A stretch of DNA of 59,534 bases, filler included, from Basidiobolus meristosporus CBS 931.73 (lineage: Eukaryota; Fungi; Basidiobolomycota), in NCBI GenBank assembly GCA_002104905.1. It is 3 parts of 3 records of this genome, joined end to end, with 100 filler letters (N's around TTAATTAATTAA, not from the genome) between each part and the next. Parts side by side here need not be neighbours in the genome. Positions count along the whole stretch, not along the records: positions 48,637 to 59,534 come from MCFE01001291.1; 2 more parts are not named here. One strand, 5' to 3'. Below, in pieces: positions 48,637 through 59,534 of the stretch. Made by a program: the position numbers and the translations under genes. The notes beneath the pieces were generated by a model. It searched no databases. It was not told the origin of the DNA and saw only the letters and a program-made list of their open reading frames with translations. How positions within the stretch are numbered: the first letter of the stretch is position 1; every line of letters starts with the position of its first letter.

Positions 48637-48699
48637 ATAGTTCAAATCAAAAAACCCTATGGCCTCTTGCTTACTAACCTCTGCAAACATGCACATCTG

Positions 48700-49620
48700 C
48701 TGCAATTGACATACTTATAACATCTCAGCTTTACAGCTCTTTAGTGTGATACTTGCAAAGTTGCCATATACCTTGTACTGCTGGTAACATATACATCTTG
48801 CAAACATATGCTTGGTTGTTGCCACTTCTGCCATGAATACCTTCTGATTATCCGCAAAGAACTTCTTGGTATTTAGCCAATATATTCCTTCTCTGTGCTG
48901 GGTTTGAGTCCCCCTTACAGGTGTGCTCTGGCTCTTGTTTGTCTGAATTCTGTATTGAATGGTGTAGAAGTTGGCTTGTGACCAAGAGAAATCCAGCATA
49001 CCTTGGTAGAGTTTTCCTAGTAAAAATTAGTTGCCTGTTGCACCCAACCCAACTTTGCATTATTTAACTGATTACCCTTGCATTGGGGCTGCTTAGCTTC
49101 TTAATGCCATAGGCATAGGTGTCTCCATGTGCACATTTGTCCTCAGTATTTTCCAGCTTATCATGGCTGTCCTCCATGTGCCAACTCATGACATTCATGA
49201 TGGACTTGAAGGTAATATTCTTGATGAAATTAGAATATGGTAGTACCTGCCACTTGACTTGTCTTCCCATCTCCCCACACATTTGCTCCTTAAGAAACTC
49301 CCAAAAGGTGAAGCAAGGCCCAATATTCTCCACACACCATGCAAGATGGAGTAGAGAATGGATACAGTAGCAGCAGAGATTTACATGTTCAGCTTTATGC
49401 TTGTAGTATAGCTGCTCAAATCCCATCACAAACTACTCACACAACAGCTGTAGATGCATCAAGTTGGCATTGGTGATTTGCTTCTGGATAAATATTGCTA
49501 CAATGTCCACATATGACTCCCAATGCTTCCAATGTACTCTTAATAGGAATGGCTTCAGAATGCCACTTGAATAAATACATATCCAGTTCATTCTATCTTT
49601 GCATTTGTATTGTTGCATAT
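48700..49620 (-). pseudogene. CACTA/En-Spm (CMC)-like transposase remnant
   Basis: HWESYVDIV...FEQLYY...IHSLLHL...IGPCFTFWEF..E.MCG...VK...PYSN resembles the conserved C-terminal half of fungal tnp2-type transposases (recognised from memory). Confidence 0.65.
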
Positions 49621-49659
49621 GAGTATGAATACAACTTATTCAATTTTCATGAACTGGGT

Positions 49660-49794
49660 ATCAGATATTTTGGTGAAAATATTCTGAGTAAATCCTAACA
49701 AGGAATTTGGAAGGTATTCTCCGAGATTGTTAGATATTTATCTAAGTGACTAAGCCAGGTGAATATTCAGGTGAGATTACAAGTTCTTACAACA
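49660..49794 (-). repeat. Copia LTR 5' fragment
   Basis: Matches about 16130-16258 and ends TTACAACA on the plus strand. Confidence 0.75.
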
Positions 49795-51966
49795 GAATTA
49801 ATGTCAATTTGAGCTCCCTGAGTAAGTTGACAATGGTGTGTGTCAATATGCGCTTGTGTTTATGGACTCCTTCCTACATATATAAATTGCAGATTTTTGT
49901 GTGATATTATGGTAACTCTCAGTACTTACGTAATTCAAGAAATTAGTAGATAACTGAAATGCAGTCAGCCACTTCACACATCCAAATCTCTCTATCAAGA
50001 TAATGGTTGCTAATGCAGAGGTTGATCTGGCAACATTCATTACTTGTTGAAATTAAAATTTTGGAAGTAGTCTGGCTGGACACTTGGCTCTTACTGTGAG
50101 ATTACGGGCATATCACAAAAATAGCCACGGCCCTGGATTATGCTCAAACATTTGTAGCACCCTCCCCAACAGATTTATACAACACACCGAGTCAGAAAGT
50201 GGAAACCACTTCCAAGGCATCGCCCACTTCCGCGACAAAATTTTGGCCCTCGCCCACTTATGAGTAATGGGCCTAAAAGCATAGGACAAATAGGCTCCAG
50301 GTTAAACTTTGCAAAAGTATGATAACAGACCAGGTGGAAGGTCAGAATAGTTTAAGTATCTAGTGTCTTCTATATTGGTTGGTGGCTTTCCATCTTTATG
50401 GATTTCCATAATTCGGAGGAAGTGACTGGCACTGCCAAGAATGACAAGTGGAATTGTGGAATATGGAGAAAAGAAACTGGCCCCTGCATTTGGATTCGAC
50501 TGGATCACCGCATGAAGACCAATTCCAAACATTAAAGCATTAAAATTGCCGGATCTAGTAGGTTGATAGGCAAAGGTGCTGTTCTCTGAGAACCACTGAT
50601 GTGTATTTGTTTTTATTCTGCAGATTAACCATCAAACCTATACAATATGACGGCTGCACACTTCCATGCTTGTAGATTAGGCAGATTGGGCGATATGAGG
50701 TATTTAGAAACTGTTTACCAATTTTAGCACTCAAAATTACCAGGATATCAGTGACTGGGGGTCAGGATTCCAGCACCCCGATCATTAGCATGCTGAGACA
50801 TTCGGTACAAAAGGCTTATCGCGATAAATATGCACAACCAGTTCACTGGGCATTAAATCGGCATTGCTGTACCGAATGTATATCAAGGCCTGGTAATTGG
50901 GTAACCAACCAACACCTAATATTAATATATCTAAAAGTAAAAGTAGCCAAAAGGGATAATCACATCCGAAATAGCCAACAGTGTATATTCAGATGTTCCT
51001 TCATTTTTGCCACGTCTGATTTTCAAACACTGATCTGGGAACAGGAAGCACGTGTGGCCGAATACGGGATCGGTTCCCATATTGGGGAAATCCAACATCA
51101 TCAACCCTGGAATTACCAACAAATTGGTACATGGCTTTCATGGTGCCCCACGCCAGATTGTGGGAAATCCTTCGTGAGTCTTATCAATACCAGTAAGGCA
51201 GCCATGCATTGATCCTTCTACAACCAGTTGATACGACTATTATCGCAATGTATCCTGGGTATATGCCGGAGCTCATGAAGTGATTCAGCGCCATTAATCA
51301 TTATCACAATGTGGTTGCACATTGGCCATGATTACCTGTGAGCTGTGAGACGAGAAGTTATACCTGATAGCGTTCCTGTGTAATACGCGTACTTAATAGT
51401 TGTGCGTTAATATTAGTGGACTTTGTCAATACAACCCCACAAGCTGTAGAGCTGATTCCAAAACAACTTGGACCACAACAGGCCATATTCCATGCGTGAT
51501 ACTCCGAAAGAATTGGGTTTATTATAGAATTATCATTCTTTCCTACATTATCTAATGAATCAAACGCGATACTCAATGGAGGAATACACATCTCACACAA
51601 TCATTTACATTTGGTACTAGGTTTGCTGGTCAGTCCAATAAGATGTGCCGCTCTCATAAATCAGACCATCTAATGGACTTTGAGCAGTGTACCCTCATTC
51701 ACGGTCTTCCACAAAATGTTCGTATGCGGGAGAAAGTGGAAAAGCATTTTTGTTACAAACTAACCTACAACTGCAAAATATCTACCTTGAGGCTAGGTCC
51801 AGTTGGTATTTGCTCATTAGTATGAAAAAATTCATACAGCTTCTGTTTATTTAATAAAGAATACGATTTCGGTCCACTGGCAAACAAATTGTTAAACTTT
51901 TAGTCTAGCCAGGCCGAGAATCTATTAGTAGAGTACGAACATCCGATACCTGGAGTTCTATAGGAA

Positions 51967-54900
51967 TCACTTCCAATCGCAAATAATAGATTGGCCGTGA
52001 GTCTTACAAACCGTACCGCTTGCACAATGATTTTGAATCAGACGTCCATTGCTGCAGACGAAAAAGACTGCCGAAGTACCCGATTGCAGACAACTATACT
52101 GACCATCGGTACACACCCTATGGTTAGCGGCCCGGGAATGAATCTCTTCCCGGGTAACCGTCATGGTTTGAATGCTATGCAATGTAACAGTTTGAATAGT
52201 AGTAACCGTAACCAGATTAATATCGGTGACAGACACAGTCAGAGTGGACGTAGCACAGCCAGGGGCACACGTGATGGCGGATGAAATTGGAATACCTAGA
52301 AAATATTCCTGTCAGAAAGATGCACAAATTGTAGCCCGTAAAATAAATACTTACCGCTTACTGGAGGGGAATAGGTTAAAGCATTTGGAATGATATGGGC
52401 ACCGCCTCCTACAGAAACCGTGGGCTGAGCTCTGACAGTGTGGTCCTTGAGAGTAGACACCTTGCCATCAATCTCTGTAATAGTAACTGTGTGCGCACCA
52501 CTTTCAACGGACAGAGTTGGTTGAACGCTAATATTGTGGTCAATGACAGTGTGAACCTTGCCATCAATCTCAGTAATGATAACGGTGTGAGCGCCGCTCT
52601 CAACTGAAACAGTAGGATGAATAGTGACAGTACGGTCAATGACAGTGTGAGCATCACTTTCAATGGAAAGAGTTGGTTGATCAGTAATACTGCGGTCAAC
52701 GACAGTGTGAACCTTGCCATCAGTCTCAGTAATGGTGACAGTGCGAGCACCGGTCTTAACGGCAATAGTAGGCTGGGTAGTGACAGTACGGTCAACGACG
52801 GTGTGAACCTTGCCGACGGTATCGGTAATTGTAACAGTGCGAGCACCGCTCTCAACGGAAGCAGTAGGCTGAGCAGTTACAGTGCGGTCAATGACAGTGT
52901 GAACCTTACCATCAGTCTCTGTGATGGTAACAGTACGAGCACCGCTCTCAGCCGAAACAGAAGGCTGAACAGTAACAGTAAGGTCAACGATGGTGTTAAC
53001 CCTGCCGTCAGTCTCTGTAATGGCAACTGTGCGAGCACTGCTCTCAACAGAAACAGAGGGTTGAATAGTGACAGTGCGGTCAACGACAGTGTGTACCTTG
53101 CCATCAGTCTCAGTAATGGTAACAGTGCGAACACCGCTCTCAGCGGAAACTGTAGGTTGAACAGGGACAGTACCGTCAATGACAGTGTATACCTTGCCAT
53201 CAGTCTCTGTGATGGTAACAGTGCGAGCACCGCTCTCAACGGAGACAGTAGGTTCAACAGTGACAGTGCGGTCAACGACAGTGTGAACCTTGCCGTCGGT
53301 CTCGGTAATGGTAAGTGTGCGAGCACCGCTCTTAACGGAAACAATAGGCTGAGCAGTAACGGTACGGTCAATGACAGTGTGAACCCTGCCGTCAGTCTCG
53401 GTAATGGTAACAGTGCGAGCACCGCTCTCAACGGAGACAGTAGGCTCAACAGTGACAGTGCGGTCAACGATAGTGTGAACCTTGCCGTCGGTCTCTGTAA
53501 TGGTGAGTGTGCTAGCACCGCTTTCAACGGAAACAGTAGGCTGAGCAGTTACAGTACGGTCAACGACGGTGTGAGCCCTGTCGTCAGTCTCTGTAATGGT
53601 AACTGTGCGAGCACTGCTCTCAACAGAAACGGAGGGTTGAATAGTGACAGTGCGGTCAACGACAGTGTGAACCTTGCCGTCGGTCTCGATAATGGTAACA
53701 GTGCGAGCACCGCTCTCAACGGAGCCAGAAGGCTCAACAGTGACAGTGCGGTCAACGACAGTGTGTACCTTGCCATCAGTATCTGTGATGGTAACAGTGC
53801 GAGCACCGCTCTCAACGGAAACAGTAGGTTGAACAGTGACAGTGCGGTCAATGACAGTATGAATCTTGCCATCAGTCTCTGCGATGGTAACAGTGCGAGC
53901 ACCGCTTTTAACGGAAACAGTAGGCTGAACAATGGCAGTGCGGTCAATGACAGTGTGAACCTTGCCGTCGGTCTCTGTAATGGTAACTGTGCGAGCACCG
54001 CTCTCAACGGAAACAGTAGGCTGAGCAGTGACAGTGCGGTCAACGATAGTGTGAACCTTGCCGTCGGTCTCTGTAATGGTGACTGTGCGAGCACCGCTCT
54101 CAACGGAAACTGTAGGCTGAGCAGTTACAGTACGGTCAACGACGGTGTGAACCCTGCCGTCAGTCTCTGTAATAGTAACTGTGCGAGCACTGCTCTCAAC
54201 GGAAACGGAGGGTTGAATAGTGACAGTGCGGTCAACGATAGTGTGAACCTTGCCGTCGGTCTCTGTTATGGTAACTGTGCGAGCACCGCTCTTAACGGAA
54301 ACCGCAGGTCGAACAGTGACAGTACGGTCATTGACAGTGTGTACCTTGCCATCAGTCTCTGTGATGGTGACAGTGCGAACACCGCTCTCAACGGAAACAG
54401 TAGGCTCAACAGTGACAGTGCGGTCAACGACAGTGTGAACCTTGCCGTCAGTCTCTGTAATGGTAACTGTGCGAGCACTGCTCTTAACGGAAACAGTAGG
54501 CTGAGCAGTTACAGTACGGTCAATGACAGTGTGAACCTTGCCGTCGGTCTCTGTGATGGTAACAGTGCGAACACCGCTCTCAACGGAAACAGTAGGCTCA
54601 ACAGTGACAGTGCGGTCGACAACAGTGTGAACCTTGCCGTCAGTCTCTGTAATGGTAACTGTGCGAGCACCGCTCTTAACAGAAACAGTAGGCTGAGCAG
54701 TTACAGTACGGTCAATGACAGTGTGTACCTTGCCGTCGGTCTCGGTAATGGTAACTGTGCGAGCACCGCTCTTAACGGAAACAGTAGGCTGAGCAGTTAC
54801 AGTACGGTCAATGACAGTGTGAACCCTGCCGTCAGTCTCGGTAATGGTAACAGTGCGAGCACCGCTCTTAACGGAAACAGTAGGCTCAACAGTGACAGTG

Positions 54901-57900
54901 CGGTCAACCACAGTGTGTACCTTGCCATCAGTCTCTGTAATGGTAACAGTGCGAGCACCGCTCTCAACGGAAACAGTAGGCTCAACAGTGACAGTGCGGT
55001 CAACGACAGTGTGAACCTTGCCGTCGGTCTCTGTAATGGTAACTGTGCGAGCACCGCTCTTAACGGAAACAGTAGGCTGAGCAGTTACAGTACGGTCAAT
55101 GACAGTGTGAACCTTGCCGTCGGTCTCCGTAATGATAACAGTGCGAGCACCGCTCTTAACGGAAACAGTAGGCTCAACAGTGACAGTGCGGTCAATGACA
55201 GTGTGAACCTTGCCGTCGGTCTCTGTAATGGTAACTGTGCGAGCACCGCTCTCAACGGAAACAGTAGGCTTAACAGTGACAGTGCGGTCAACGACAGTGT
55301 GAACCTTGCCGTCGGTCTCTGTAATGGTAACTGTGCGAGCACCGCTCTCAACGGAAACAGTAGGCTGAGCAGTTACAGTACGGTCAATGATAGTGTGAAC
55401 CTTGCCGTCGGTCTCCGTAATGGTAACAGTGCGAGCACCGCTCTTAACGGAAACAGTAGGCTCAACAGTGACAGTGCGGTCAACGACAGTGTGTACCTTG
55501 CCATCAGTCTCTGTGATGGTGACAGTGCGAGTACCGCTCTCAACGGAAACAGTAGGCTTAACAGTGACAGTGCGGTCAACGACAGTGTGAACCTTGCCGT
55601 CAGTCTCTGTAATGGTAACAGTGCGAGCACCGCTCTCAACGGAAACAGTAGGCTGAGCAGTTACAGTACGGTCAATGATAGTGTGTACCTTGCCGTCGGT
55701 CTCGGTAATGGTAACTGTGCGAGCACCGCTCTCAGCGGAAACAGTAGGCTGAGCAGTTACAGTACGGTCAATGATAGTGTGAACCTTTCCGTCGGTCTCG
55801 GTAATGGTAACTGTGCGAGCACCGCTCTTAACGGAAACAGTAGGCTGAGCAGTTACAGTACGGTCAATGACAGTGTGAACCTTGCCGTCGGTCTCCGTAA
55901 TGGTAACAGTGCGAGCACCGCTCTCAACGGAAACAGTAGGCTGAGCAGTTACAGTACGGTCAATGACAGTGTGAACCCTGCCGTCAGTCTCGGTAATGGT
56001 AACAGTGCGAGCACCGCTCTTAACGGAAACAGTAGGCTCAACAGTGACAGTGCGGTCAACCACAGTGTATACCTTGCCATCAGTCTCTGTAATGGTAACA
56101 GTGCGAGCACCGCTCTCAACGGAAACAGTAGGCTCAACAGTGACAGTGCGGTCAACGACAGTGTGAACCTTGCCGTCGGTCTCTGTAATGGTAACTGTGC
56201 GAGCACCGCTCTCAACGGAAACAGTAGGCTGAGCAGTTACAGTACGGTCAATGACAGTGTGAACCTTGCCGTCGGTCTCCGTAATGGTAACAGTGCGAGC
56301 ACCGCTCTTAACGGAAACAGTAGGCTCAACAGTGACAGTGCGGTCAACCACAGTGTGTACCTTGCCATCAGTCTCTGTAATGGTAACAGTGCGAGCACCG
56401 CTCTCAACGGAAACAGTAGGCTCAACAGTGATAGTGCGGTCAACGACAGTGTGAACCTTGCCGTCGGTCTCTGTAATGGTAACTGTGCGAGCACCGCTCT
56501 CAACGGAAACAGTAGGCTGAGCAGTTACAGTACGGTCAATGATAGTGTGAACCTTGCCGTCGGTCTCCGTAATGGTAACAGTGCGAGCACCGCTCTTAAC
56601 GGAAACAGTAGGCTCAACAGTGACAGTGCGGTCAACGACAGTGTGTACCTTGCCATCAGTCTCTGTGATGGTGACAGTGCGAGTACCGCTCTCAACGGAA
56701 ACAGTAGGCTTAACAGTGACAGTGCGGTCAACGACAGTGTGAACCTTGCCGTCAGTCTCTGTAATGGTAACAGTGCGAGCACCGCTCTCAACGGAAACAG
56801 TAGGCTGAGCAGTTACAGTACGGTCAATGACAGTGTGTACCTTGCCGTCGGTCTCGGTAATGGTAACTGTGCGAGCACCGCTCTCAGCGGAAACAGTAGG
56901 CTGAGCAGTTACAGTACGGTCAATGACAGTGTGAACCTTGCCGTCGGTCTCGGTAATTGTAACAGTGCGAGCACCGCTCTCAACGGAAACAGTAGGCTCA
57001 ACAGTAACAGTGCGGTCAACGACAGTGTGAACCTTGCCGTCAGTCTCGGTAATTGTAACAGTGCGAGCACCGCTCTCAGCGGAAACAGTAGGCTGAGCAG
57101 TTACAGTACGGTCAATGACAGTGTGAACCTTGCCGTCAGTCTCGGTAATTGTAACAGTGCGAGCACCCCTCTCAACGGAAACAGTAGGCTCAACAGTGAC
57201 AGTGCGGTCAACGACAGTGTGAACCTTGCCGTCGGTCTCTGTAATGGTAACTGTACGAGCACCGCTCTCAACGGAAACAGTAGGCTCAACAGTGATAGTG
57301 CGATCAATGACAGTGTGAACCTTGCCGTCAGTCTCGGTAATTGTAAGAGTGCGAGCACCCTCTCAACGGAAACAGTAGGCTCAACAGTGACAGTGCGGTC
57401 AACGACAGTGTGAACCTTGCCGTCGGTCTCTGTAATGGTAACTGTACGAGCACCGCTCTCAACGGAAACAGTAGGCTCAACAGTGATAGTGCGATCAATG
57501 ACAGTGTGAACCTTGCCGTCAGTCTCTGTAATGGTTACTGTGCGAGCACCGGTCTTAACGGAAACAGTAGGCTCAACAGTTACAGTACGATCAACGACGG
57601 TGTGAACCTTGCCGTCGGTCTCGGTAATGGTAACCGTGCGAGCACCGCTCTCAACGGAAACGGTAGGCTCAACAGTGACAGTGCGGTCAACGACAGTATG
57701 AACCTTGCCGTCAGTCTCTGTAATAGTAACTGTGCGGGCACCGCTTTCAACGGAAACAGTTGGATGAACGGTAATAGTCCGGTCAACGACAGTATGGACC
57801 TTTCCATCTGTCTCGGTAACGGTAATTGTGCGAGCACCACCTTTAACGGAAATCGTAGGATGTAAGGTAAAGGTGCTGTCAATAATAGTGCGGACTGAGT

Positions 57901-59533
57901 CTCCTGATTCAGTTACGGTCACTGTCGGTGCTGAGATCGTTATATCGACTGAAGTTTTGCTTTGTAATGTTACGATGCTGGCCACATTTTCCGTTACAGA
58001 ATGCGTATAGGTTGCTGTTGGTTCGGTGATGGTTACTGGAGGCTCTGTTACTGTAATGCCCACGGATTTATGGTGTTGAATGGTCACCTCCTCCGAAATA
58101 TTCTTTGTAACAGTGTGCTTATACGTTACTGTTGGCTCGGTTATAGTGATTGTAGGCGGGGTGATTGTTATATTGACCGATGACTCGTGTTGGATGGTCA
58201 TCTCGCGCGATGATGTTTCAGTAACTGTATGCTTGTATGTTGCTGCTGGCTTAGTGGTAGTTGTTGTTGGTTTCGCAGCGGTAATTTCCACAGTTGTGCC
58301 ATGTTGAATTGTGACTACTTTTGAAATCCCCTTTGTAACTGAGTGTTTATCGGTTATCGTAGGTAAAGTTACAGTAATAGTTGGTTCGGTAACTGTCACG
58401 TTAGCTGAAGTGTTCGGTTGGATGGTCACCTCTTTGGATGCTTTCTGGGTCACGGAATGCTCGTATGTCAGTGTAGGTGCAGTGATGGTCAAGGTTGGCT
58501 CAGTCACGGTAACATCAATCGACTTACGGTGTTGGATAGTCACCTTCTTGGTTTCTCCGGTCGTAATTGAGTTCGTATATGTCACTGTGGGTTTACTTAC
58601 TGTAACAGTCGGTTCAGTGATTGTTACATCAATCGAAGTCTCGCGTCGAATGGTCACTACGTCTGATGGTTTATCAGTCACGGAACGTTTGAGAGTCAAT
58701 GTTGGCTCAGTGACCGTAATTGTTGGTTCCGTAATAGTAACTTCAACTGAAGTAACATGCTGAACGGTCACAATCTCCGAATTCTTCTTAGTAACCGATT
58801 GCTTATATGTCAAAGTAGGTTCAGTAACTGTTACAGTCGGCTCAGTGATTGTTGTAGTAACTGAAGTTTCAGGTTGAATGGTCACCCAGCTGGATGGTTC
58901 GACAGTTACGGAATGTTTGTAAGTTAACGTTGGCTCAGTGACGGTAACTGTTGGTTCGGTAATAGTAACTTCAATGGAAGCTTCATGCTGAACTGTAACT
59001 TCCTTCGAAGCCTCTATAGTAATAGAGTGCATAATGGTAACTGCTGGCTCAGTAACTCTGCCCGTTTCCTTGGAATTAATGCTACGATGCTTGTTTGACT
59101 CAGTGCGATGGTGTTCACTATAGTGAGGCTTTTCGGTCTCAATCGACTCTGACTCATGGCGTTCACGGGAGTGAGGGTTACTGGCCTTCTTAGACTCACT
59201 GTGATGGCGCTCGCTTGAGTGAAGCTTCTCAGTTGCCTTAGACTCTGGCTGATGATGACCACTTTGGTGAGGCTGCTCAGTCTCCTTAGACTCTGTGTGC
59301 TGGCGCTCGCTTGAGTGAGGCTTCTCAGTTGCCTTAGACTCTGACTGATGGTGTTCACTGGAGTGAGGCTTCTCAGTCTCCTTGGACTCTGTGTGCTGGC
59401 GCTCGCTTGAGTGAGGCTTCTCAGTTGTCTTAGACTCTGACTGATGGTGTTCACTTGAGTGAGGCTTCTCAGTCTCTTTGGACTCTGTGTGCTGGCGCTC
59501 GCTTGAGTGAGGTTTCTCAGTTGCCTTAGACTC
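51967..59533 (-). CDS. Giant Thr/Val-rich tandem-repeat protein with a C-terminal 6-Cys CBM19-like domain (5'-partial, >2,400 aa; exons >59533-52355 and 52295-51967; 1-bp frameshift at about 57358-57360); putative cell-wall or adhesin-like protein
   Basis: The frame is open from 59533 to about 57360, then (one base restored) to 52355. The intron splices in frame to GIPISSAITCAPGC...VCTDGQYSCLQSGTSAVFFVCSNGRLIQNHCASGTVCKTHGQSIICDWK*. Confidence 0.8.
52296..52354 (-). other. 59-bp spliceosomal intron
   Basis: Donor G|GTAAGT, CTGAC branch-like motif and TTTTCTAG| acceptor. Phase-1 splicing joins two open frames. Confidence 0.85.
52400..57860 (-). repeat. Coding tandem array, 96-bp/32-aa unit x ~56 (TVTITETDGKVHTVVDRTVTVEPTVSVESGAR)
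   Basis: Directly visible periodicity; units are near-identical at 54.4-57.4 kb and more divergent toward 52.4 kb. Confidence 0.97.
57860..59040 (-). repeat. Coding tandem array, ~114-bp/38-aa degenerate unit x ~10 (IEVTITEPTVTVTEPTLTYKHSVTVEPSSWVTIQPETS-like)
   Basis: Translation of ORF 57101-59032 aligns in 38-residue register. Confidence 0.85.
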
Positions 59534-59534
59534 T
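59100..59534 (-). repeat. Coding tandem array, 48-bp/16-aa His/Ser/Glu/Lys unit alternating as a 96-bp pair (ESKATEKPHSSERQHT / ESKETEKPHSSEHHQS)
   Basis: Manual translation from 59533 in the same frame as ORF 57101-59032 (offset 501 bp), with no stops. Confidence 0.85.

Follow-up and report, generated by a model that had tools for sequence, protein, structure and literature searches.

A giant repeat-protein gene predicted to encode a beta-helix rod with a chitin-binding-module-like C-terminal domain

What kind of protein, if any, is encoded by a long array of Thr/Val-rich repeats that leads into a Cys-rich end? This question is raised by the minus strand at positions 51967-59534 of the window, by which we mean the whole stretch of 59,534 nucleotides of DNA that was analysed. 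The region is the 3' 7.6 kb of a giant repeat-protein gene and encodes approximately 2,500 residues; the gene runs past the piece edge at 59534, and reading-frame translation places its N-terminus beyond that edge. A single strand is continuous through three repeat types, a canonical and phase-compatible intron and a Cys domain, with the following features:

59054..59533, minus strand: block 1, 16-aa units (translation, TRF, composition)
57902..59053, minus strand: block 2, 38-aa Thr/Val-rich units (anchors, TRF)
52407..57901, minus strand: block 3, 32-aa units (TRF, unit listing, dN/dS, AlphaFold, fold matches)
57359..57361, minus strand: frame break, one base short (three-frame translation, comparison with the units 96 nt either side)
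52296..52354, minus strand: putative 59-nt intron, phase 1 (sequence reading; frame change that reopens the exon; splicing inferred)
52123..52295, minus strand: first part of exon 2, with a CxxxC pair, Thr/Val-rich strands and a short predicted helix (translation, AlphaFold)
51970..52122, minus strand: C-terminal six-Cys domain of approximately 50 aa (Pfam, Atlas, model, fold matches)
51967..51969, minus strand: TGA stop codon (sequence reading)

The three distinct repeat blocks named in a preliminary description of this DNA were recovered by TRF, translation and unit listing, with at least 9.5 copies of the 16-aa unit, ten of the 38-aa unit and approximately 57 of the 32-aa unit. Block 1 is built from the His/Glu/Ser/Lys unit ESK(A/E)TEKPHSSE(R/H)(Q/H)H(T/S) (E 21%, S 20%, H 16%, K 11%), gives TRF periods of 48 and 96 at 59097-59534 and matched no Pfam family; as it is cut by the piece edge, its copy number is a lower bound, and any signal peptide lies outside the piece. 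The ten units of block 2, VTIQHxxSVEVTITEPTVTVTEPTLTYKHSVTxxxSxx, have anchors spaced exactly 38 aa apart, and the TRF period of 228 nt corresponds to two of them (2 x 38 aa). Beyond composition, no significant profile similarity was found between block 2 and the 32-aa unit. Block 3 consists of tandem copies of SGARTVTITETDGKVHTVVDRTVTVEPTVSVE (consensus SGARTVTITETDGKVHTVVDRTVTVQPTVSVE), for which TRF reports 54.4 copies with 88% matches. Its unit had been described as Thr/Val-rich with turns, and this agrees with a content of 24% Thr and 20% Val and the presence of DG and SG turns, while Cys, Trp, Phe and Met are absent from the block. The unit had also not been recognised as any named repeat family, and indeed no Pfam or NCBIfam entry matched it; searches of 1.84 billion protein cluster representatives, metagenomes and prokaryotic genomes returned no relatives of the repeats.

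Since several frames are open across the array on both strands, block 3 could in principle be a non-coding 96-bp minisatellite with accidental open frames. The differences between its units argue against this. At the DNA level, 43 of 48 units are distinct, variability peaks at the third position of codons, and synonymous and non-synonymous differences stand at 180:147 in the proposed frame versus 86:241 in the open antisense frame. A dN/dS of 0.275 in the proposed frame (pS 0.22, 48 units), compared with 0.74-1.03 for the others, shows that purifying selection acts on the 32-aa units in the proposed frame. This frame also connects the array to two further kinds of repeat, a canonical intron and a Cys domain that gives CBM-like matches, and the minisatellite reading, scarcely credible on these grounds, is close to refuted. 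The coding frame is, however, not the one uninterrupted frame of more than 2,400 codons that had been claimed, because a 1-nt deletion at 57360/57359 breaks it. At this site, the GAGAGCGGT of neighbouring units reads GAGAGGGT, which is a base short relative to their AGC (Ser) codon. The break splits the model into pieces of 722 and 1,669 codons in different frames, the upstream frame being counted from 59533 and the downstream frame resuming at 57359. If the deletion is real, the gene might be a pseudogene or truncated allele, in which the repeat frame is left after 5.5 units and followed by 87 out-of-frame, Leu-rich codons and a stop at 57103-57101, so that the product loses approximately 51 units and the Cys domain. 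We consider this unlikely, although the deletion is plain in the sequence, since the 1,669 codons downstream of it contain no further stop or frameshift, exon 2 is still open, the units carry a signature of purifying selection and the intron is intact. Any inactivation must therefore have been very recent, or the base was lost through an assembly error in the 5.5-kb tandem array; one of these two is the most likely origin of the break.

Downstream of block 3, an intron had been proposed, and the sequence signals at 52354-52296 are those expected of it: a GTAAGT donor, a CTGAC branch site approximately 16 nt ahead of the TAG acceptor and a length of 59 nt. Splicing in phase 1 would restore the split codon G|GT as Gly, and the frame change across the intron reopens an exon 2 of 108 codons. 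We take an intron of 59 nt with GTAAGT and CTGAC to be typical of fungi. Exon 2 encodes 108 residues with eight Cys, of which C9 and C13 form a CxxxC pair directly after the last coil; its first part is modelled with a pLDDT below 55 (AlphaFold, single sequence) and might close off the rod as its end or cap. The protein terminates in ...GQSIICDWK*, and, as had been noted, its six-Cys end has no GPI-type hydrophobic tail. An AATAAA motif is found at 51851, 115 nt past the TGA stop. No recognisable gene was found in the flank, which is strongly CpG-depleted.

How might the repeats fold? For eight 32-aa units, AlphaFold predicted a parallel beta-helix in which every unit makes up one coil, its three strands being 8, 11 and 6 residues long (pLDDT 85.6, pTM 0.82), from a pseudo-alignment of six near-identical rows of the same array that holds almost no independent information. 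The description of a giant modular beta-rich protein is supported, but the beta-hairpin rod that had been envisaged gives way to a predicted parallel beta-helix (beta-solenoid). The best structural matches to the model were SufB/SufD proteins (Z 16.5-17.2, rmsd 3.1-3.3 A over 220 residues), followed by Awp1 (7o9q; Z 11.9, rmsd 3.0 A over 171 aa, 10% identity) and Awp3b (Z 11.0), and autotransporter, SRRP, TPS and pectate-lyase helices were matched with Z 9-12. With approximately 57 coils at 4.8 A each, the 32-aa block would form a rod of approximately 27 nm.

The last six Cys of exon 2 are spaced C-x6-C-x11-C-x9-C-x5-C-x8-C, with all six in approximately 45 aa. The resemblance to CBM19 that had been suggested holds insofar as CBM_19 (PF03427) ranks first among the Pfam families (profile positions 17-57 of 61, E 0.0025), but its 18.2 bits lie under the gathering cut-off of 20.1 bits; CBM_14 (PF01607, peritrophin-A) was matched with 16.2 bits and E 0.011, under a cut-off of 22.1 bits. 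The Atlas lead for the domain is an Ascomycota CBM19 cluster with a score of 0.77. In the AlphaFold single-sequence model, residues 60-108 form five strands with a pLDDT of 76-81, and six of the top 26 fold matches are CBM14-type structures, all weak (4zce and 6so0, Z 3.3; 4z4a and 2mfk, 2.9; 6bn0, 2.5; 5zjl, 2.3), the top match being an unrelated Fsx1 domain with Z 5.5. Foldseek aligned the domain to 6so0 with E 0.47, an rmsd of 3.2 A over 47 columns and 30% identity. The domain appears chitin-binding-module-like, with scores below those for formal Pfam membership.

These predictions have to be weighed against other readings of the same protein. The Thr/Val repeats might not form a solenoid in vivo, but an extended stalk that is heavily O-glycosylated and mucin-like, or else small, separate beta modules of the kind proposed for the Als tandem repeats. 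AlphaFold tends toward solenoids for near-perfect repeats, two of its five models had low confidence (pLDDT 60 and 54), the alignment was nearly without independent information, Ser and Thr make up 31-33% of residues, and an extended stalk could be favoured if exposed Thr were heavily O-mannosylated in a fungal secretory pathway. On the other hand, the remaining three models agree (pLDDT 77-86), and the strict alternation of hydrophobic and polar residues, turns with conserved Gly, Pro and Asp, and the dN/dS of 0.275 argue for a defined fold rather than a stalk defined by composition only; a non-solenoid structure seems to us unlikely, but it deserves real weight. The Cys-rich region, in turn, might be a disulfide-stabilised cap that shields the end of the beta-solenoid, blocks end-to-end association and does not bind chitin. 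This is suggested by analogy with the Mortierellaceae INpros, for which a six-Cys C-terminal region has been proposed to cap the solenoid that precedes it (PMC12978214), and it would fit the CxxxC pair directly after the last coil, the CBM scores below both Pfam cut-offs and the weak fold matches. We nevertheless regard a pure cap as improbable, as the six Cys belong to a five-strand domain of their own, approximately 45 residues and one helix past the last coil, and chitin-binding modules are the only family and fold leads for it. Finally, the DNA might come from an animal or protist rather than a fungus, in which case the protein would be chitin-associated, resemble a peritrophin or mucin and carry a CBM14-type domain. 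The CBM_14 match, structural leads that are all CBM14-type, the CpG depletion of the flank and a search that found no fungal relative point in this direction, but CBM_19 outscores CBM_14, the Atlas lead is ascomycete, the intron is presumably of fungal type, and the observed Cys spacing seems at odds with the CBM14 consensus. We therefore think a non-fungal origin very unlikely.

The reading we favour, with somewhat better than even confidence, is that of a lineage-restricted, secreted wall or surface beta-helix rod protein that attaches to chitin through its C-terminus and is encoded by a eukaryotic gene with fungal-type intron signals. Each of the 32-aa units, and perhaps also each of the ten 38-aa units, would contribute one coil of three strands to an uninterrupted parallel beta-helix, in which the alternation places Val and Ile inside and Thr rows outside, giving a stiff rod. 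This rod would be followed by a short cap region and by the 50-aa disulfide-bonded beta domain of chitin-binding-module type. Given the lack of a GPI signal, the most likely attachment is a non-covalent one to wall chitin via the C-terminus; a yeast chitin-binding module has been shown to hold fusion proteins on a fungal surface (PMC2903697). This would leave the rod and the charged, His-rich N-terminal repeats projecting outward, as a spacer, an adhesin or a protein that affects surface properties. A bolder proposal, which we consider quite unlikely, is that the protein represents an undescribed class of eukaryotic surface fibre, a single-chain beta-solenoid of more than 1,800 residues and approximately 57 coils with continuous Thr ladders on its faces (TxTxTxT on one strand), in which a terminal Cys module that holds chitin replaces the GPI or PIR link. 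With hydroxyls arrayed in so flat and repetitive a manner, the fibre could impose order on water, as in ice binding or nucleation, or assemble with itself side by side, a property that would have arisen independently of InaZ-type proteins.

To our knowledge, the surface proteins of fungi outside the Saccharomycotina have been little described, and almost every known adhesin with a long stalk carries a GPI anchor. If confirmed, a rod of this many near-identical beta-helix coils, a repeat that lacks relatives in so large a set of protein clusters yet is under clear purifying selection, and a likely non-covalent chitin anchor would all be new, and together they would amount to a new repeat family and a new way to build and attach a wall fibre. 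For the study of very long single-chain beta-solenoids, such a rod would offer an attractive natural scaffold, the value of the present sequence being limited for now by an N-terminus outside the piece and a frame that is broken once.

How does this protein compare with known systems? The resemblance to CBM19 (PF03427) modules lies in the six Cys in approximately 45 aa and the C-terminal position of the domain, but here no catalytic domain is attached and the score is lower than the family cut-off. The Als/Flo adhesins resemble it in their long tandem arrays of Thr/Val-rich, beta-prone units of approximately 32-36 aa in a presumed surface protein; they differ in that no GPI signal is present here and in that both the number of units and their conservation are much higher. 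An Als-type adhesin was rejected, as the Als repeat profile gave no match at E up to 10, no Pfam adhesin family was matched and the C-terminus (...SIICDWK) has no hydrophobic tail, any N-terminal Ig-like binding domain lying outside the piece. The ice-nucleating Mortierellaceae INpros and bacterial InaZ combine a charged, flexible N-terminal region with 23-60 near-identical beta-solenoid coils, TxT rows and a Cys-containing C-terminal end (PMC12978214). This architecture is similar to that predicted here, and their rods of 13-25 nm compare with approximately 27 nm, but the proteins are non-homologous and serve as an analogy only, with units of 16 aa compared to 32 aa. An InaZ-type protein was likewise rejected: TxT rows are present, but the SLT and YGS motifs are absent and no Pfam ice-nucleation family was matched. 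The SufB/SufD core (PDB 9h78, 1vh4, 5awf), although the best geometric match, belongs to cytosolic Fe-S assembly proteins with 6-7% sequence identity, and fold geometry alone is therefore held in common. The A-regions of Candida glabrata Awp1 and Awp3b form a right-handed parallel beta-helix (PDB 7o9q, 7o9p; PMC8746771), and these fungal cell-surface proteins thereby contain a parallel beta-helix like the one predicted here; as no search returned a sequence match to the Awp/Hpf clusters, the similarity is at the level of the fold only. The Awp proteins carry a short N-terminal A-region helix followed by a beta-sandwich and are GPI-anchored, whereas the protein described here would extend a helix over approximately 57 near-identical coils and end in a Cys domain.

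Between 48637 and 59534, a piece that contains no N letters, the minus strand carries a real, constrained and very large repeat gene, which exits the right edge of the piece, so that its N-terminus is missing from it.

Features of the repeat gene, in reading order
59054-59533, minus strand: block 1, at least 9.5 copies of a 16-aa unit, ESK(A/E)TEKPHSSE(R/H)(Q/H)H(T/S)
minus strand: block 2, ten units, each exactly 38 aa, VTIQHxxSVEVTITEPTVTVTEPTLTYKHSVTxxxSxx
minus strand: block 3, about 57 units of 32 aa with the consensus SGARTVTITETDGKVHTVVDRTVTVQPTVSVE
52354-52296, minus strand: predicted intron of 59 nt in phase 1, with a GTAAGT donor and a CTGAC some 16 nt ahead of the TAG acceptor

Block 1 is rich in E (21%), S (20%), H (16%) and K (11%). 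For block 3, TRF reports a 96-nt period with 54.4 copies and 88% matches; our count of about 57 units is higher because degenerate end units were also included. Cysteine is absent from the entire 2,391-residue repeat part, and Trp, Phe and Met are also absent from the 1,669-residue piece downstream of the frame break described below. The block 3 array (52754-57266, minus strand) has a weak higher-order periodicity, in which units 6 or 12 places apart are the most alike (identity 0.915 and 0.927, respectively, versus approximately 0.89), and contains two interspersed unit subtypes, VVDRTVTVEPTVSVE and VIDRTVTAQPTVSV(E/K). The His-rich unit at 59054-59533 (minus strand) has a DNA super-period of 96 nt, the length of the 32-aa unit of block 3. 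Statistically, there is no support for the 38-aa and 32-aa units sharing an origin.

The preliminary description of this gene assumed one continuous reading frame. A single base is missing at 57360/57359, where the sequence reads GAGAGGGT and neighbouring units read GAGAGCGGT, and the frame is therefore interrupted. The codon register upstream is counted from 59533 and restarts at 57359; in the assembled sequence, the frame coming from upstream runs into 87 out-of-frame codons and then a stop codon at 57103-57101. As no damage is found in the 1,669 codons downstream of the break, nor in exon 2, the missing base is either a very recent lesion or an assembly error in the 5.5-kb tandem array. Every search took the pieces on either side of the break, and exon 2, separately.

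Several frames are open across the array on both strands, and the proposed frame therefore required a coding test, which was based on 48 well-aligned 32-aa units, 43 of them distinct at the DNA level. Read in the proposed frame, the third codon position varies the most (0.128, as compared to 0.063 and 0.033 at the others), and codon differences from the consensus comprise 180 synonymous and 147 non-synonymous changes. The long open antisense frame gives 86 synonymous and 241 non-synonymous changes for the same 48 units. Nei-Gojobori estimates over all unit pairs yield a pS of 0.224, a pN of 0.070 and a dN/dS of 0.275 for the proposed frame, while dN/dS is 0.74 for the antisense frame and 1.03 for the two shifted frames. 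The substitution pattern, the dN/dS ratio and the 43 of 48 distinct DNA units show that the array is old and that the peptide unit is constrained. The plus-strand ORF at 52617-57413 (1,598 codons, ATG start) is an antisense artefact, as judged by its 86:241 ratio and dN/dS of 0.74; a prokaryote-style gene caller could choose it as the gene.

Downstream, the 3.3 kb of flank (48637-51966) contain no recognisable gene, and no Rfam families or tRNAs were found in the piece 48637-59534. Only one CpG (o/e 0.02) occurs in the interval 48637-49636, along with more TpG and CpA than expected (o/e 1.4-1.7); CpG o/e climbs towards the gene, to 0.3-0.7 along a gradient reaching approximately 50600, and is about 1 inside the gene. 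Classical RIP is ruled out by a TpA/ApT ratio of 0.77, and the decay of 48637-49636 is CpG-targeted. This suggests that a methylated or CpG-hypermutated repeat remnant lies next to the gene. A stop-free stretch of 122 aa at 49067-49432 (minus strand) contains HSLLHLAWCVENIGPCFTFWEF, which we took to resemble a KDZ or tnp2-type transposase motif; this reading is unsupported, as the ORF has no Pfam match and a word-index protein search returned no homologue. On the plus strand, a 178-codon stop-to-stop frame at 50676-51209 gives a weak APOBEC3-like Pfam match (E 0.014, 15.9 versus 27 bits) over residues 123-173, with H-x2-E and C-x4-C, which is probably due to chance.

Pfam and NCBIfam searches returned a real family for none of the repeat blocks. 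Matches of the repeats to Pfam tRNA_edit, Imm-NTF2-2, CARM1 and SPP1_Dit were rejected as artefacts, because they add up short beta-hairpin matches, in which significant stretches are few or absent. The 722-aa piece upstream of the break, which contains all three repeat types, gave six matches (E 1e-5 to 1e-3) in a full HMMER search against 1.84 billion cluster representatives, and all of them proved on inspection to be unrelated bacterial or animal repeat proteins. Similarly, the 16-aa unit of block 1 has its best database match (E 1e-4) in the unrelated protein P0003, whose HTSSIETKPGHSS repeats resemble it in composition only. The 1,669-aa repeat piece had no match in a word-index protein search. 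There was no relative in pattern scans of the JGI metagenomes (with the repeat alignment) and of 185,579 prokaryotic genomes, only chance-level rows in an Atlas search of the repeats, nothing meaningful in PDB sequence searches with all pieces, and no occurrence of the repeat motifs in the papers searched. This lack of relatives holds for the repeats; exon 2 with its Cys domain was screened in narrower sets, namely by a word-index search among proteins of 59-189 aa and a metagenome scan reaching close relatives, both of which found none. Four ORF translations of the window were looked up exactly and none was present in the searched protein collection; thus, the databases covered by these negative searches probably lack the source genome and may lack its close kin as well.

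Eight 32-aa units were modelled with AlphaFold, using an alignment of five other eight-unit stretches from the same array (A1), which adds almost no independent information; the five models reached pLDDT values of 85.6, 84.6, 77.0, 60.1 and 53.8, with a pTM of 0.82 for the best one. AlphaFold is inclined to build solenoids from near-perfect repeats. Each unit is predicted to form three strands of 8, 11 and 6 residues, and a structure search independent of Foldseek aligned the eight-unit model to parallel beta-helices. Instead of the hairpin rod initially put forward, these models and fold matches predict, confidently albeit unverified, a beta-solenoid with one coil per 32-aa unit for block 3. 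At the usual rise of 4.8 A, 57 coils would form a rod of about 27 nm. The alternation in RTVTITET would point Val and Ile inward and the four Thr outward.

Exon 1 ends at 52355, and predicted splicing at 52354/52296, as read from the sequence, connects it with the 108-codon exon 2, which ends with a stop codon at 51969-51967. The protein ends in ...GQSIICDWK and, as noted previously, lacks a hydrophobic C-terminal tail. Exon 2 contains eight Cys residues, the last six spaced C-x6-C-x11-C-x9-C-x5-C-x8-C. The earlier likening of this Cys domain to CBM19 holds insofar as Pfam CBM_19 is the closest lead (E 0.0025, profile positions 17-57 of 61), but the score of 18.2 bits lies below the 20.1 cut-off for formal membership; CBM_14 scores 16.2 bits, below its cut-off of 22.1. 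In the Atlas, the lead is a cluster of CBM19 domain-containing proteins from Ascomycota, at a low score of 0.77. Together with the intron signals, the CBM_19 lead is the basis for regarding the gene as fungal. A single-sequence AlphaFold model of exon 2 is poor for residues 1-55 and has five strands and a pLDDT of 76-81 for residues 60-108. All its fold matches are weak, the best being an unrelated Fsx1 domain (Z 5.5), and CBM14-type folds recur at Z 2.3-3.3 (Der p 23, chitotriosidase CBM14, two Avr4 structures, Blo t 12 and Der f 23); the weak match to 6so0 has an rmsd of 3.2 A and 30% identity over 47 columns. Profile and model suggest that the Cys domain is chitin-binding-module-like, with CBM19 closest. 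Alternatively, the Cys region might cap the end of the solenoid rather than bind chitin, by analogy with Mortierellaceae ice-nucleating proteins, in which six cysteines with a proposed capping role come after the solenoid (PMC12978214). For secretion, orientation and function we infer the following: the protein is probably secreted, and the C-terminal module would hold the rod non-covalently on chitin, leaving the charged, His-rich N-terminal repeats exposed at the opposite end.

The 32-aa unit is new, in a protein that probably belongs with the already known tandem-repeat surface proteins of fungi. Among known structures, the eight-unit model aligned to SufB/SufD-type cores with Z 16.5-17.2 and an rmsd of 3.1-3.3 A across 220 of its 256 residues, and to CsgA with Z 15.2. 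Z was 11.9 for Awp1 and 11.0 for Awp3b, two wall proteins of C. glabrata, and 9-12 for the helices of autotransporters and of TPS and SRRP adhesins, for pectate lyases and for tailspikes.
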